A DNA stretch of 64,000 nt from Octopus bimaculoides (taxonomy: Eukaryota). This document shows positions 4,241 to 64,000 of this stretch, piece by piece; positions within the stretch are counted from its first letter, which is position 1; each line of letters opens with the position of its first letter. Location: assembly GCF_001194135.2 (NCBI RefSeq), contig NC_068988.1, positions 12,881,947 to 12,945,946 on the forward strand, written 5' to 3'. The translations under genes were made by a program, and so were the position numbers. The notes under the pieces are model-generated. The model saw only the letters and a program-made list of their open reading frames with translations, made no database searches and was not told where the DNA came from.

Positions 4241-4534
4241 AGTTAGATAATTATGTTGATTTAACATGTGAAGCAACCAGAAGTAAATCAAAACAGCTGC
4301 TGTATATTTTCAACAGGAGATATACAATGAAATAAGATTTAAGAAAATCTTAACAGTCACAAGAATCTAAAAAAAAAAATTCTTTTTAATTAAAAAAAAA
4401 AGTAGAAACAAAATTTAACAAAAATAATATAAACAGCAGCTTTGCAATACTAAAATTTCTCACTTGTTTTTGGTAATCAGTGGCTATTGTACTCCAGGGG
4501 GGGCCAGTCATTAGAATAAAGAGATCACACTTAC

Positions 4535-4829
4535 CTGCCTGTACTAATTTCTACATAATAATAATCCATGTATTAATCCAATGTATATAAAGTGAATACA
4601 ATAAACAATCCTATAGGTGACCAATTCTGACCTGCCACACACAAGTAATAGTAATATGAAATAGCGCACCTCTTTCCAGTTTTTCCTTAGTTCTTTCAAT
4701 ATAAGTGGTCTTGTTCTGATATCGGGGACTATGACGACTTCTGGGGCTGTCATCTCTTGTCCTGTCGTCATCGGGGGAGCTTCGCAGCTTTTCACAGCGA
4801 CTGGTGATTGTATATGGGTACTGCATGCC
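4535..4829 (-). CDS. Internal exon (295 nt) of an unidentified minus-strand gene; two long open frames, one Arg/Ser/Asp-rich
   Basis: Acceptor TTTTTTCTTTTTAAATTTTAG|GGCATG at 4829 and consensus donor CAG|GTAAGT at 4535. Frame A reads GMQYPYTITSRCEKLRSSPDDDRTRDDSPRSRHSPRYQNKTTYIERTKEKLERG (stop 4611-4613). Frame B reads ACSTHIQSPVAVKSCEAPP...LLLCRN* (stop 4544-4546). Possible internal donors are CAG|GTCAGA (4632) and GAG|GTGCGC (4670). Confidence 0.7.
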
Positions 4830-7177
4830 CTAAAATTTAAAAAGAAAAAAATAGCAAAAATCCAGAAATGGGATTATATTAAAGGAAAGAAGATATATAA
4901 TCATATATTTAATTCTACATGTCATGTACTTAATTACCAAAACTGAAATAAGACTGATCAATTTTACAACAGAATCTAATTATTCAGTTTTTTTTAAAAA
5001 TATTGTATATGAGAAGGTAAGTAGAAAATTTTGTTCCTTTCTAATTAAAAAAAAAAAAAACTGAACCTGTCAAATATACTACAAATACTGATGGTTTCCA
5101 CATCACCCCAGTGGCAATCTCATATTCTTAACATAATAAAATAAATTATGATAAAAGTTAGAAAATATTTCAACTGATCTATTGATTCTCCACAAAGTTC
5201 AAAGTGCACAATGGAAGCTTTCTCCAACATTTGCAGCAGTATACATGCACATAACAAACTGAATAAAAATTTTTTTTAATAAAATAAAGCCAACAGACTG
5301 ATTTGCAAAGATTCATTCACCAACACATTACAAACACCCCCAGGTCAACAAGCAGACTCCTTGGACCCCCTGGCTACATAACACTGAAGCTAAGTATCTT
5401 GTCCCATATGTTTAGATCAACTGAAGTCTACCAAGTGAAATATGGTGGACAGAAAGTGCATGAAAATCAATTAGGTGGATATGTGTTTGTTCTAAATGAC
5501 AATCAGGGCTTCACAAAAATACCTTCAAATATTTATCATATTTGGGTTACACTCAGGCTGACTTTGCTGGTTCCAGCTTACAAGGTTGATAAATTTGTAA
5601 CATGCACAATCAACTAAAACTCTGAACACAAGTAATCCAATGAAACCAGTAAATAAAAGATCTATTTTCCAAAAGATTTATTCTGCCAAGACTAGGATTT
5701 AAATTTCAGATATACTCACAAATGAAGTCGAACATTTATTAGAAAATTTTAATTTTTCCCACACTAAAAAGTAAATATTTTTAAGCTTTGGTATATTTTT
5801 TCTTTTCTCTTTCTTTTTATCTCTATGCTTAATACAGTTTTTTTTTTTTTGTTTTAAATTTTTTTAATTATTTAACTATTAGTACTCCACAAATTTCATG
5901 CCCTTTTTTCTTACAGCCACACATTTTGCACCTGCCAATATCAAAGACTGAATTTAGTATGGATCTTTTTTGAATTCAAATTCTTCACAATTTCTTTGAC
6001 ATTGTCCTTCAAACAATATTGATTAGTTATAAATAGATCACCCACTGTACCAAAATAAAGCTTAATAGGTATCTGTACATGATAAACAAATCTTTAAAAA
6101 CTGCTGTGATGGTTGTATATGAAAAATTGTAAATTTAGATTTCTTACAGAAATTTTTTTTTATTTTAAAAATACGAACATAGATTATAAAAAAGTGGCAT
6201 TTTAATTATTTATTAATGATTTATTGAAATAGCTGAAGTAAAAAGATGAAAATAATCAAATTAAATTAATGTACATTAAATAAAATTTGTGTCAAAACAA
6301 AAAATAATTTGAATAGTAAAGAATTGCCATTTAGATGTGATTTGAGATTGAATACAAATAACATTGTATGTTGTGGCTTATACAGAGTGTTATTTTAATA
6401 AACTAAGCTCCATAAACTTTAAGAGTCACAAATAAAAAATAATTCATTATGGCAATTTAAAATTTTGCTGTATTTGAGTCTAATAACAGTATATATAACT
6501 CTTTAAACTGCCAATACAAAACATTTTTATACACTGTATCCACCAAGTACTGTAAAAACTGACTATGAAAATCTTTCTTGTTATGTAGATTTTTTTGGAA
6601 GTCGCTTTTAGCAATAAGTATACAAATTTTGTACAAAATAAGAAGTATAACAAGTAAGAAATTATAAAATATTAGATTTCAATAATTATTTACACTAAGG
6701 GAAAAAATTACAACTTTCCAGTGCTATCAGACAAGTAGCACAATTTGTCTTGTTAACTATTTATTCCTGCCTTAAAGTGGTTCTTTGAAATCATAAATTC
6801 TTGTAATTTTTTTCTTTGACATTTTCTCTATCATTTTTTAAAAATATGACCTATGTATTTCCATTACTAAATAAAGATACCATGGGTTGTTCAGACAAGT
6901 CTAACTTTTCAGTTGCTTTTGAATTAGTTATAATCTATATAAAATACTCCCAGAGTAAGTTTTCTTTCTATATTTCCTATAACTTCCTCTATGTTTCAAA
7001 ACTACATTTCCTTAATATAAAATTCTCCTTCATATTATTTTCATTACATTTGTTATTCAAAAGTATTTTTAGCAAAGCTGATCCATGATAGAACTATCTT
7101 GCATAAGATACAATTTGAGTGTAAAGTTGTTTCTATTGACATAATTTAACTTTTTAGTCAAAAACAAACAAATTTAC

Positions 7178-7218
7178 TTTGCATTTATTAATGTCTGACA
7201 GGATTCACACTTTGCAGT
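7178..7218 (-). CDS. 41-nt internal exon (TAKCESCQTLINA-K) of the minus-strand gene
   Basis: Very strong polypyrimidine tract TTTTTTTTCTTTTTTTTTTTCTTTTATAATCCTCAG|ACT and donor AAA|GTAAAT. Open in frame 0; ends in phase 2. Confidence 0.55.
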
Positions 7219-8279: not shown

Positions 8280-9322
8280 GAGGATCAAAGACTTGAAGTA
8301 TTTCGTGTTGCAAGACAGTGTGTGAGAGAGAATCGTGATGTCGTAGGAGAGAAATGTGTTCGCATGGATGATGGTATGCTTGCACTAAACGAGGCTGCAA
8401 AGAAAGAGGTTTGGAGACACCACTACGGAAGATTGCTCAATAAAGAGAATGAATGGGAGAAAGAGAGTCTGCCGAATGTCGACCCAACAGAGGAACCAGC
8501 TATCCGAGTTGACAGTACCATAGTAGATAAAACAATTAAGAGTATTAAGACAGGGAAAGTCCCCGGCCCATCAGGAATCACTGCAGAGATGCTCAAAATA
8601 TCTGTCAGTGTCGGCTATAGCCTAGTCACCCGTATTGCTAACTAGGTGATACACGAAGGAGTCATACCCAATGACTGGTATAGCAGCACCTTAGTCAACT
8701 GCTACAAAGGTAAAGGTGACGCTTTAGATACAAATAATTACAGAGGTATCAAGCTGTTAGATCAGGTAATGAAAGTCACAGAGAGGGTCATAGCTCAACT
8801 AATTAGGGAGCGAGTCAGTTTAGATGAGATGCAGTTTGGATTCATGCCAGGGAAAAGCACCACTGATGCTATATTTCTGGTAAGACTGCTGCAGGAGAAA
8901 TACCTAGCCAAGGATAAACCTCTGTACCTGGCTTTCGTTGACATGGAGAAGACCTTTGACAGAGTCCCCCCGATCCCTTATCTGGTGGTCAATGAGGAAA
9001 CTCGGGATAGAAGAATGGTTAGTGAGAGCTATGCGAGCCATGTACAGAAACGCTGTCAGTAAGGTGAGGGTTGGCAACTAGTACAGTGAAGAATTCCGAG
9101 TAGAGGTAGGGGTCCACCAAGGTTCTGTCCTCAGCCCCCTCCTACTTATCATAGTCCTCCAGGCGATAACAGGAATTCAAGACAGGATGCCCCTCGGAGC
9201 TCCTCTATGCTGATGACCTTGCACTAATTGTTGAGTCACTATCAGAACTAGAGAAGTTTCAGGTGTGGAAGAAGGGACTAGAATCAAAGGGCCTTAGAGT
9301 CAACCTAGCTAAAATCAAAGTA
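8280..9322 (+). mobile_element. RTE-clade LINE reverse-transcriptase fragment (truncated, one stop, frameshift)
   Basis: ORFs 8322-8645 and 8646-9062 contain GKVPGPSGITAEMLK, YKGKGDALDTNNYRGIKLL, QFGFMPGKSTTDAIF and AFVDMEKTFDRVP. They continue through GVHQGSVLSPLL to YADD (9206-9217). Confidence 0.95.
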
Positions 9323-9606: not shown

Positions 9607-9670
9607 CTGTACATTATAAGGAACGCTTTTAACCTTCAAATTCTGAAAATTGTCTCTTGTTATCAATATC
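9607..9670 (-). CDS. 64-nt internal exon (R-ILITRDNFQNLKVKSVPYNVQ) with an alternative 3' splice site giving a 36-nt form (9607-9642)
   Basis: Donor CAG|GTAATA at 9607. Acceptors TTTTTATTTAAG|GAT (9670) and ATTTTCAG|AAT (9642). The long form starts in phase 2 and ends in phase 0. Confidence 0.5.
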
Positions 9671-20860: not shown

Positions 20861-22230
20861 AGAAACAGTTCTGTATATTTTTTATCATTTTTATAATTTG
20901 TATACATTGATATGGTGTGATATGGTGAGGGGTTATTGTATATCATTTGCAAAGCAAGAAATTGAGATTTTCTTTGTGATGATCTAATGTTATGAAAAGA
21001 CAATTAGAGACACAAACACAAATATATATTTGAAATTTGAGAATTACTTCATAGTTTTTGAAGTGTAAAGGTGATTTTGTTTTTCTAGTATGTACACACA
21101 CACAAAGAAAAAATCTTTTTATCACTGTTTTAATTTGAAATTACTTGGCATAAAATAACAAAAGTATGTTACTAATTGCCAGAAATAATAAAAATTGTGT
21201 CTCCTATTTTGCTATGTGATAATAGTCTGCAAGTTCATTGCTCTGACAAAGATTTTATCTGAATAAATTATCTAGACACAATAATAATGAACACCATTCT
21301 CAGGCTTCAACATGTATATTTCGTTTAATGCTTAGATTTAAAGAACTCTTTATTTTTCTATATTGAAACTTTTAACCAGTTTTCCTAAAATCACACATCT
21401 CCTGACCAAATCGTAAGCCCTCTTGCTTGCCAGCTCCTGTCAGACCATCCAATCCATGCCAGTATGGAAAACGGACGTTAGATGATGATGATTGTCAAAA
21501 GGCCTTCTATAAGTAAACATATGATGTGTATAGGAGCACACTACAAGCTAAGTACTTTACCTACAGTTGTCTCCTGCTGACAGCACCAATAATAGCTCTT
21601 CCTGAAACAAAGCTGAACTGCATTTTATCTAAGCTAATTCTGTTCCTAATCAGTTGTGCTATGACTAAAAGAAACTTTCATAACCTGATCAATCAACTTA
21701 ATGCCTTCATAATTTCCTCTCCCTAGTTCATTTTTACTCTTGTAACAGTTAATGAAGACACTGTTACCTTAGTGACTGTATGATGATTAACTATGCATGT
21801 GATGAGTACATGAACTAACCCTGCCAGATATTTTCAGCATTTCTGCAACTAAACCCGACAGTCCAACCACCTTCTCTACCTCATATTCTTAATCATTCTA
21901 TCTACCATTCAGCAATCAACCTGGATAGTTGATCCTTCTGTTGGGTCCACTAAGAATAGGCCCCTCTCTGTGTGCATTTACCTCATTTATCAGTATCTTA
22001 TATTAGAAGTACGATACACACTTAGAAAGACTGGACAAAAGGATATAGCAAAGAGCATTACCAAACAGCGAGATACAAGGCATACTTAGCTAGAAGAGAA
22101 AAGAAACTAAAGAGTTCACTACATGAGGAGTTCAAGATTGAAGCACTTAGCTTATAGTATGCTATGTACCTAGCATATGTTTATATATATAAGGCCTTTG
22201 ACAATATTGCACTTCGAAAATGTTATATGT

Positions 22231-22680
22231 GGGTTTATCATCATTTAACGTCTGCTTTCCATGCTGGCATGGGTTGGACAATTTGACTGACTGGCAAACC
22301 AGATGGCTGCACCAGGCTCCAATCTGATCTGGCAGAGTTTCTATAGCTGGATGCCCTTCCTAACACCAACCACTCCGAGAGTGTAGTGGGTGCTTTTACA
22401 TGTCACCGGCACAAGGACCAGTCAGGCAGTACTGGCAATGGCCACACTCAAATGGTGTTTTTTATGTGCTACCTGCACAGAAGCCAGTCTGGTGGCATTG
22501 GCAACGACCTCGCTCAAATTTTTTTTTTTTCGGGCCACCAGCACAAGTGCCAGTAAGGCAACACTGGTAATGATCACGCTCAAATGGTGCTTTTTATGTG
22601 CCACCAGCATGGAAGCCTCAGACGGTGCTGTTGGCGCTCCACTGGCACAGGTGCCAGTCATCAAATTTGATTCAATTTCA
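22231..22680 (-). mobile_element. SINE-like repeat with internal tandem subrepeats
   Basis: Tail ATCATCATTTAACGTCTGCTTTCCATGCTGGCATGG plus three ~60-70 bp internal repeats (...GCTCAAATGGTG...ATGTGCCACC). A related copy lies at 23370-23720. Confidence 0.8.
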
Positions 22681-45429: not shown

Positions 45430-46235
45430 TTGACATGTTGGTGCCACAATAAAAGCACCCAGTACACTTTGTAAAGAAGTGGATGTTAGGAAGGGTATCC
45501 AGCTGTAGATAGCAGGTCAAAGCAGACTTTGGAGTATGATGCAGGCCTTCAGTCCATCAGATCCTGTTAAACTGTCCAATCCATGCCAGTGGCATGTAAA
45601 AAGCATCAAGTACACTGTTAAGTGGTTAGCGCTAGGAAGGGCATCCAGCTGTAGAAACCATGCTAGCTCCATGTCAAACTATCTAACCCCTGCTAGCATG
45701 GAAAACAAATGTTAAAAGATGAAGATAATAAATATATCATCATATATATGCTTATATACGTTATATAAGTTTTATTTATATATCATCATCATTTAACGTC
45801 TGTTTTTCATGCTGGCAGGGGTTAGACAGTGTACTGGAACTGGATGCTTTTTACTTGCCACTGTCATGTATATATATATTCATATATCATGTCAAGCTAA
45901 GTAAAATCTTGGTCCCTGCATCCCTCTTCAGCTGACCAATCCTAATCTTTTGGGCTCATGGATGCTGGTGCCATGTCAAAAGCAACCATGCTGGTGTTGC
46001 ATAAAGGCATCCAGTACATTCTGTGAAGTGGCTGGTGTTAGGAAGGACATCCAGCTGTAGAAATCATGCCAAACAGACATGGAATCCAGACATCTCTTCA
46101 ACTGGCCAGTTCTTGCCAAACCATCCAATGCATGCCAGCATGGAAAACGGAGGTAAAATGGTGATAATATACATGTATATATATATATATATATCATCAT
46201 CAACATTTGATAGCTGTTTTCTATGCTGGCATGTA
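45430..46235. mobile_element. Cluster of RTE-tail SINE fragments in both orientations
   Basis: Three forward copies (GTTAGGAAGG.CATCCAGCTGTAGA) and two inverted tail fragments. Confidence 0.8.
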
Positions 46236-63689: not shown

Positions 63690-64000
63690 TGCTTAGTACT
63701 AGTGACACTGTGAAATACACTTAATCCATGCTGTATAAAGGTTGGTGATAGACTAGAATATAGTTGTAAATCCATGCCAGCATGGAATGGCAAATGTAAA
63801 ATGATCATGATCATACATTTTTTATAGATACATAAATACATATATCATCATCATCATCATCGTCATCGTTTAACGTCCGCTTTCCATGCTAGCATGGGTT
63901 GGACGATTTGACTGAGGACTGGTGAAACAGGATGGCAACACTAGGCTCCAATCTAATTTGGCAGAGTTTCTACAGCTGGATGCCCTTCCTAATATGTATA
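63690..64000. mobile_element. Tail-to-tail SINE pair
   Basis: Forward tail CCATGCCAGCATGGAA and inverted copy ATCATCGTTTAACGTCCGCTTTCCATGCTAGCATGG. Confidence 0.8.

Follow-up and report, generated by a model that had tools for sequence, protein, structure and literature searches.

A conserved +1 reading frame overlapping the WAC coding sequence of Octopus bimaculoides and a candidate octopod-conserved extension of its exon 3

On the minus strand of the 64,000-nt window of the Octopus bimaculoides genome considered here (the window being the whole stretch of DNA analyzed, identical at 100% to CM046608.1 of assembly GCA_001194135.2, hereafter L003), the interval 4829..4535 is open in two long reading frames, and the question that it raises is whether a single segment of DNA is read in two ways and, if so, by which route the second frame is reached. 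A preliminary description of the window, whose quoted bases, frames, and peptides proved exact in the minus-strand sequence, had answered with a splicing switch: a 41-nt exon (7178..7218), following a 64-nt exon (9607..9670), would toggle the interval between a frame encoding a serine/arginine-rich (SR)-like N terminus, here called frame A, and a frame encoding a small membrane-type protein, here called frame B. Our analysis leads to a different answer, which we hold with considerable confidence as a whole: the interval contains exon 3 of WAC, the gene of the WW domain-containing adapter with coiled-coil; the 41-nt cassette is not real; a conserved +1 open reading frame (ORF) overlaps the WAC coding sequence (CDS); and the exon is probably prolonged by an octopod alternative 5' splice-site extension.

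The host gene was recognized through an index-free HMMER search with frames A and B concatenated in one query, and the identification by means of frame A that the preliminary description had recommended led in this way to WAC. All six matches lay in the part of the query that came from frame A, and the top one, P0001, contains the exon peptide exactly at residues 26 to 78. The 90% cluster of P0001 comprises 12 proteins, 11 with NCBI records and the twelfth from a Logan RNA assembly; the NCBI label of the former, which belong to O. bimaculoides, O. sinensis, O. vulgaris, and Argonauta hians, is WAC or a truncated form of it. Both P0012 and P0001 present the features of a WAC orthologue, namely, the N-terminal motif MVMxARK..RL.DG, a single WW domain, and a C-terminal coiled coil (..RILFL.QQIKELE..), and Pfam recognizes the WW domain (PF00397, E = 2e-10) in the WAC protein. 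Residues 3 to 41 are identical in all the proteins of the cluster and the first 100 residues in 11 of the 12, the Argonauta WAC differing at three positions within this span. In particular, residues 26 to 78 of the annotated O. bimaculoides WAC (XP_014778412.1) are encoded exactly by the exon, frame A showing no difference from the annotated gene, and exons 1 and 2 also lie inside the window. The interval is exon 3 of O. bimaculoides WAC, an ordinary annotated exon. Neither the proteins listed in the cluster nor the literature searched contained a match to the +1 ORF or to the conserved extension described below. Frame A, frame B, and the exon alignment returned nothing or almost nothing in a word-indexed protein search, an index that overlooked P0001 itself, where the 53-residue query is exact, so that a lack of homologues in it does not equal absence.

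The structure of the transcript could be read from an RNA contig (L001) of a close congener of O. bimaculoides (99% identity in the CDS, 87.5% in the 3' untranslated region, UTR) and from the 12 proteins of the cluster. In the productive mRNA, exon 2 (36415..36382) is joined directly to 4829, and exon 3 is left through the donor after 4670; this join and this exit are common to L001, where the junctions read CTGTATCAG/GGCATGCAG and GGAAAGAG/GCTCCACTG before the contig continues outside the window, and to all 12 octopod proteins, whose isoform differences lie elsewhere. Because of this shared structure, exon 3 is the 160-nt segment ending at donor 4670, both small segments are intronic, being enclosed in the 31.5-kb intron 2, and the ATG at 4826, 3 nt into the exon, which had been taken as a start codon of frame A, is Met27 and no start codon. 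Exon 3 codes for WAC residues 26 to 78 (GMQYPYT...KEKLER) and for the first base of Gly79, with a peptide that is exact in XP_014778412 and in 11 other octopod WAC proteins. Its GC content is 47.5%, compared to 21 to 28% in the flanks, and its acceptor and donor phases are unchanged in four non-octopod species. Moreover, the CDS could be rebuilt exactly from genome DNA in O. bimaculoides, Argonauta, and the bivalve Solemya velum; between Octopus and Argonauta, the coding exons are 91 to 100% identical and the 3' UTR is 83% identical.

Measured against this structure, the preliminary description had placed the edges of the 295-nt interval correctly (ttttag before it, gtaagt after it); the acceptor at 4829 is real, being used in L001, and the interval behaves as one conserved unit between Octopus and Argonauta. 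However, every known mRNA or protein ends the exon at donor 4670, which had been listed as a mere exit option, and not at 4535. The other exit option, donor 4632, is considered incidental, because its GT is a GC in Argonauta. The true upstream exon is the one at 36415..36382 and not the 64-nt segment. As for the SR-like N terminus, frame A corresponds to WAC residues 26 to 78, and the only Pfam domain of the protein is the WW domain, the exon peptide having none; exon 3 contains only a few isolated RS/SR dipeptides, and the combination of an RNA recognition motif with a repeated RS/SR domain is not found.

Exons 1 and 2 together supply 75 nt of coding sequence, which places frame B of exon 3 in the +1 frame of the CDS and allows it to be followed along the spliced mRNA. 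The spliced +1 frame of O. bimaculoides has a stop at codon 2 and the next one at codon 318 (317 in L001), with 19 more after it, and it is open over 315 codons (3 to 317); the corresponding spans are 325 codons in Argonauta (3 to 327) and 359 in Solemya velum (3 to 361). The +1 ORF terminates in or near the alternative 36-nt exon 8, and the number of stops in the +2 frame is 67 to 72 for the two octopods and 51 for Solemya. Of the proposal that the exon is read in two frames, one part thus stood, frame B belonging to a +1 ORF that remains stop-free for over 300 codons in the WAC genes of three molluscs, and the splicing mechanism and the products attached to it did not.

The openness of this frame was compared with that of shuffled sequences. 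Permutation of codon order gave an expectation of 8.0 +1 stops, with no stop-free case (P(0) = 0/5000); synonymous shuffling with the protein fixed gave 8.7 stops when codons were drawn from the gene-wide pool (P(0) = 0/20000) and 5.8 when they were shuffled within the region only (P(0) = 5e-5), and the region shuffle of Solemya gave 7.0 (P(0) = 5e-5). Across the shuffles, zero +1 stops stand against 5.8 to 9.1 expected, with P <= 5e-5 in each of the three species. As controls, +1 stops past the ORF are at or above expectation in all three species (20 versus 14.6, 18 versus 14.4, and 23 versus 16.7), and stops in the +2 frame match expectation over the same span. We could also notice that the Ile, Leu, and Val codons ahead of A-starting codons all end in C or T. 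At the local scale alone, given the codons of frame A, frame B would be open by chance over the 160-nt core with a probability of 0.16 to 0.24, and over the tail beyond donor 4670 with one of 0.03 to 0.10. The two open frames are mildly unusual locally and highly unusual across the whole spliced mRNA, and the choice among synonymous codons keeps the +1 frame open in octopods as well as in a bivalve. Furthermore, exon 3 is open in the +1 frame in four further species, and exons 4 and 5 are so in one of them; at identical residues, Octopus and Argonauta retain the same codon in 93% of cases within the overlap versus 82% downstream (p = 4.6e-4).

The beginning of the +1 ORF is also conserved. Exon 1 contains the annotated AUG (36655..36653), a second in-frame AUG (36649..36647), and a +1-frame AUG (36645..36643) located 10 nt past the annotated one, with which the +1 ORF, of 314 to 315 codons in Octopus, starts (AUGGUAAUGCAUGCAAGG gives MQGNFQDSMMGM...) and which Octopus, Argonauta, and Solemya share. 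Within the initial 45 nt of the WAC CDS, Octopus and Solemya velum agree at 44 positions, synonymous ones included (window 36611 to 36655; L008 501 to 545), and in both the annotated AUG has a U at -3, which is a weak context. The 122-nt leader (36656 to 36777, minus strand) carries six upstream AUGs, opening upstream ORFs (uORFs) of 1 to 11 codons, and is identical at 119 of its 122 positions between O. bimaculoides and Argonauta, a level that exceeds that of most WAC coding exons. Taken together, the long open +1 frame, its controls, and the conserved start suggest that the overlapping ORF is conserved and that it would be entered through leaky scanning or reinitiation: ribosomes would get to the +1 AUG past six short uORFs and a weak -3 U, and the WAC mRNA would give rise to a second overlapping protein with no splicing switch required. 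It is possible to hypothesize that WAC may encode two proteins.

The second feature of the locus follows the donor in use. The Octopus-Argonauta alignment unexpectedly runs through the 4670 donor and covers a further 135 nt, here called the tail. Identity is 84% over the 45 nt ahead of the acceptor, 97.5% in the exon core, and 94.8% in the tail (128 of 135 positions, Argonauta hians); past the 4535 donor it is 84% over the next 25 nt and at most 54% further out. Along the locus, the blocks that can be aligned are exons with short flanks, and conservation past the donor extends for 5 to 14 nt in the other WAC exons, and for 174 nt in exon 3 only. The CAG/GTAAGT donor at 4535, kept in Argonauta, ranks second among the 3832 GT sites of the minus strand, according to splice scores that derive, here and below, from an approximate matrix and are meant for ranking only. 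Stops occur in the tail in all three frames. As had been described, frame A runs from GMQYPY...KEKLER into GALFH..GHL and then a stop, and frame B is open up to a TAG just short of the 4535 donor (Table 1). In the main frame, the stop comes after 19 codons in Octopus but already after 14 in Argonauta, where an additional TGA lies five codons ahead of the shared TAG.

These elements are those expected in the sequence of a poison extension, with a TAG more than 50 nt (76 nt) before the junction and 94.8% identity amid unalignable intron. With the tail included, translation would terminate after 19 codons of it in the main frame and after 41 in the +1 frame, and the mRNA so formed would represent an unproductive isoform of the nonsense-mediated decay (NMD) type or encode short isoforms; in that case, the tail would owe its high conservation at the nucleotide level to the control of splicing and not to protein coding. 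The tail is probably an octopod-conserved alternative 5' splice-site extension, a candidate for terminating translation.

Several observations weigh against this twofold interpretation. Regarding the +1 ORF, same-codon retention between Octopus and Solemya is 53% in the overlap versus 45% outside, a difference that is not significant; the Solemya protein is 42% identical to Octopus WAC over the +1 ORF region, and the 33% similarity between the +1 proteins of these two species could follow from conservation of frame 0; Pfam assigns no family to the predicted +1 protein, and no homologue of the exon-3 part of frame B emerged from the HMMER search. The +1 protein and its translation are predicted from sequence. 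Regarding the tail, the comparison comprises two octopod genomes only, and neither the tail nor the second strong donor is present in Solemya or in four other non-octopod species. Exact look-ups of eight predicted ORF or isoform products, among them those of long exon 3, cassette inclusion, the Argonauta variant, and bare window ORFs, gave no match, such look-ups being low-powered. In the literature searched, nothing relevant was found on an overlapping ORF, dual coding, a poison exon, ultraconservation, or leaky scanning in WAC.

Among the alternatives, the most serious one holds that the tail is never exonic and acts within the intron as a splicing-control or transcriptional element, for example, as a decoy or U1-recruiting site helping the weaker 4670 donor. 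Consistent with this, the tail appears in no known transcript, its conservation is equal over codon positions, and it holds UG-rich and U-rich runs; in addition, a helix is predicted between UUACUUGUGUGU and the 4535 donor, and its pairing is preserved through two one-sided changes from G-U to A-U. However, conservation stops about 25 nt past a perfect CAG/GTAAGT, as it does at an exon-intron boundary, the predicted fold of the tail is weaker than that of shuffled sequences (z = +2.1), and the two species offer no covariation. On balance we regard a purely intronic element as unlikely, with an appreciable chance of being correct all the same, and prefer to read the tail as an alternative 5' splice-site extension. 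A structured RNA was also considered for the tail and rejected on the basis of the same z value and of the lack of compensatory pairs; an Rfam scan of the whole window gave nothing at gathering thresholds, and a conserved 22-mer of the tail had 0 matches in a metagenome scan.

A second alternative concerns the +1 ORF, which could be open by an accident of composition, with no overlapping gene, since the N-terminal 60% of WAC is hydrophilic, T-poor, and of low complexity. The CDS indeed contains 38% A and 22% T, few Leu, Ile, Val, and Met codons occur in the open span, and the openness of exon 3 taken alone is within reach of chance; the lack of a known domain in the +1 protein, of an HMMER homologue for its exon-3 part, and of extra synonymous conservation at deep divergence would also fit. 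However, shuffles that preserve both the protein and the regional codons still expect 5.8 to 7.0 stops (P(0) = 5e-5), independently in octopods and in Solemya; past the ORF, +1 stops return in normal or excess number, and the +2 frame is normal throughout; the start AUG and its surroundings are conserved almost base for base; and among octopods the synonymous rate is lower inside the overlap. Compositional accident is improbable in our judgment, and a +1 frame kept open by codon choice remains the preferred reading.

It could further be supposed that the tail is itself coding in frame B, so that a long-exon isoform translated from the +1 AUG through leaky scanning would yield a 116-amino-acid protein with a hydrophobic end. 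Of the three frames, only frame B escapes an early stop in the tail; its stop, 9 nt before the conserved donor, is shared with Argonauta, and the tail holds two hydrophobic stretches. However, openness is expected anyway at 95% identity, the long exon is predicted from genome DNA, and the seven substitutions of the tail are spread evenly over the frame-B codon positions; those inside the ORF comprise 4 nonsynonymous and 1 synonymous change, versus 38 synonymous and 13 nonsynonymous in the real WAC exons. The synonymous/nonsynonymous test of frame B (1:8) is retained for the tail only and was withdrawn for the exon core, where it is biased because main-frame third positions are +1-frame second positions. 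The hydrophobic tail of the product imagined in the preliminary description lies beyond the donor in actual use. The comparison of frames in relatives that had been suggested found frame B uninterrupted across exon 3, and the tail changes affect all codon positions. A coding tail appears very improbable, and the nucleotide conservation of this segment is better attributed, if the extension is used, to the control of splicing.

There remain the two small segments invoked by the splicing toggle. The donor of the 41-nt segment is equalled or exceeded by 639 of 3832 GT sites and its acceptor by 315 of 3420 AG sites of the minus strand; AG..GT pairs scoring at least as well as this segment number 50 between 4830 and 9606 and 540 on the whole strand, and 197 candidates on the minus strand are as good as the 64-nt segment, whose acceptor is overlapped by a tandem repeat. 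When it is joined to the real exon 2, which ends in phase 0, the 64-nt segment is translated as DIDNKRQFSEFEG and closed by a stop after 13 codons, which makes the reading frame claimed for it impossible. With thin RNA sampling, neither segment was found in L001 or in the 12 isoforms, and the phase-0 join is the only entry into exon 3 found in L001 and the 12 proteins. A homologue of either segment in Argonauta intron 2 was not found, even with 7-nt seeds, whereas the genuine 36-nt cassette of WAC, taken as positive control, was recovered in Argonauta at 96% identity over 78 nt (E = 2e-33); this alternative exon 8 (ELNRETSITKVK) is conserved together with about 240 nt of flanks (L003 82057 to 82327; L002 53867 to 54128) and lies outside the window. 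Both small segments consist of ordinary intronic DNA. The arithmetic of the toggle is correct, as the real upstream exon ends in phase 0 and an insertion of 41 nt would shift the reading into frame B, which is open through the tail in Argonauta too, but the model is unsupported because of the background splice scores (50 equivalent candidates in 4.8 kb), the stop in the real phase, and the missing Argonauta counterpart, and, with the tail placed past the donor in use and the small exons missing from the transcripts in hand, it is scarcely credible.

The features of the WAC locus are collected in Table 1.

Table 1. Features of the WAC locus in the window (positions in the window; all on the minus strand)
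Feature	Position	Strand	Remarks
WAC exon 1	36615..36777	-	L001 positions 1-166 align at 99.4%; includes the 122-nt leader
WAC exon 2	36382..36415	-	34 nt, ...YGDKKETHLYQ, phase 0 at end; true upstream partner of exon 3
64-nt "exon"	9607..9670	-	Judged a chance AG..GT pair in intron 2
41-nt "cassette"	7178..7218	-	Judged a chance AG..GT pair in intron 2
Polypyrimidine and acceptor flank of exon 3	4830..4874	-	38/45 nt identical in Argonauta versus 46% further upstream
WAC exon 3, constitutive	4670..4829	-	160 nt, phase 0 in, phase 1 out; L001 100% identity
Exon-3 part of +1 ORF (frame B core: ACSTHIQSPV...RKNWKE)	4670..4828	-	Within the stop-free +1 frame
135-nt extension	4535..4669	-	Ends at consensus CAG/GTAAGT, GT at 4534..4533; outside known mRNAs
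TAG of the main WAC frame in the extension	4611..4613	-	76 nt before the 4535 junction; kept in Argonauta
TAG ending frame B (+1) in the extension	4544..4546	-	9 nt before the 4535 donor; kept in Argonauta

The DNA around these features is AT rich (GC 33%), includes 1594 N, and is populated by microsatellites and repeats. Assembly gaps are found at about 50.2 kb, 54.6 to 55.4 kb, 56.4 to 56.7 kb, and 57.3 kb, flanked by TA/CA microsatellites. A fragment of reverse transcriptase of the long interspersed nuclear element (LINE) type (Pfam RVT_1, E = 8.7e-10) occupies 8322 to 9081 of the plus strand, in intron 2, between the two small segments. A repeat resembling a short interspersed nuclear element (SINE) is present in at least eight partial copies (1630 to 1940, near 21420, 22240 to 22406, 28690 to 28814, 41148, 45436 to 46189, and 63769 to 63995); its copy at 1719 to 1799 on the minus strand has the best-scoring acceptor/donor pair of the window, which shows the strength of chance splice signals here. 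A transposon origin of the exon interval and of the two small segments was rejected, each being single-copy within the window.

WAC is a dosage-sensitive chromatin/transcription adaptor, and a neurodevelopmental syndrome results in humans when one copy is lost. If the interpretation proposed here is true, WAC variants and expression data would have to be read differently in the light of a hidden second product or of a conserved unproductive isoform; should the +1 frame turn out to be closed elsewhere, an annotated exon accompanied by an octopod-specific conserved intronic block would be left. In its broadest form, which we put forward tentatively and with less than even confidence, WAC would be an ancient dual-coding gene, with a +1 ORF of more than 300 codons translated by leaky scanning or reinitiation and open at least since the cephalopod-bivalve ancestor, and octopods would in addition have a conserved alternative 5' splice-site extension of exon 3 that ends both frames and possibly tunes both outputs.

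To our knowledge, long overlapping frames conserved across animal classes are very rare, and the few known to us (GNAS/ALEX, INK4a/ARF, POLGARF, altFUS) each proved to encode a functional second protein. Dual coding of overlapping ORFs by alternative initiation is known for GNAS XLalphas/ALEX, POLG/POLGARF, altFUS, and SRD5A1, the last with three nearby AUGs (PMC13352861, PMC7788448, 10.1101/2020.03.06.980391). WAC resembles the GNAS/ALEX, POLGARF, and altFUS type in the presence of a long alternative-frame ORF within a conserved CDS, shortly past an AUG in weak context, and in the conservation of its openness over species; synonymous change is reduced in the overlap between Octopus and Argonauta, but not significantly between Octopus and Solemya. 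Different from these, the ORF of WAC is unusually long (315 to 359 codons) and is documented in molluscs in place of mammals, and its translation is predicted.

Frame switching by non-triplet splicing or alternative first exons is exemplified by CDKN2A INK4a/ARF and by dual-coding exons (PMC13247117, 10.64898/2026.05.28.727796). An exon read in two frames in this manner is what the preliminary description had proposed for WAC exon 3; however, no WAC transcript in hand shifts the phase of the exon, and the presumed cassette is unconserved and at chance level. A third kind of system, in which unproductive splicing is coupled to NMD through a conserved "poison" sequence, includes the poison exons of SR proteins and the alternative splice sites of Caenorhabditis elegans rpl-3 and rpl-12. 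Whereas the WAC tail has so far been found only in octopods and both the use of its 4535 donor and its sensitivity to NMD are predicted, it shares with those poison sequences the premature stops, a conservation at the level of coding exons, and a strong conserved splice site at its edge.

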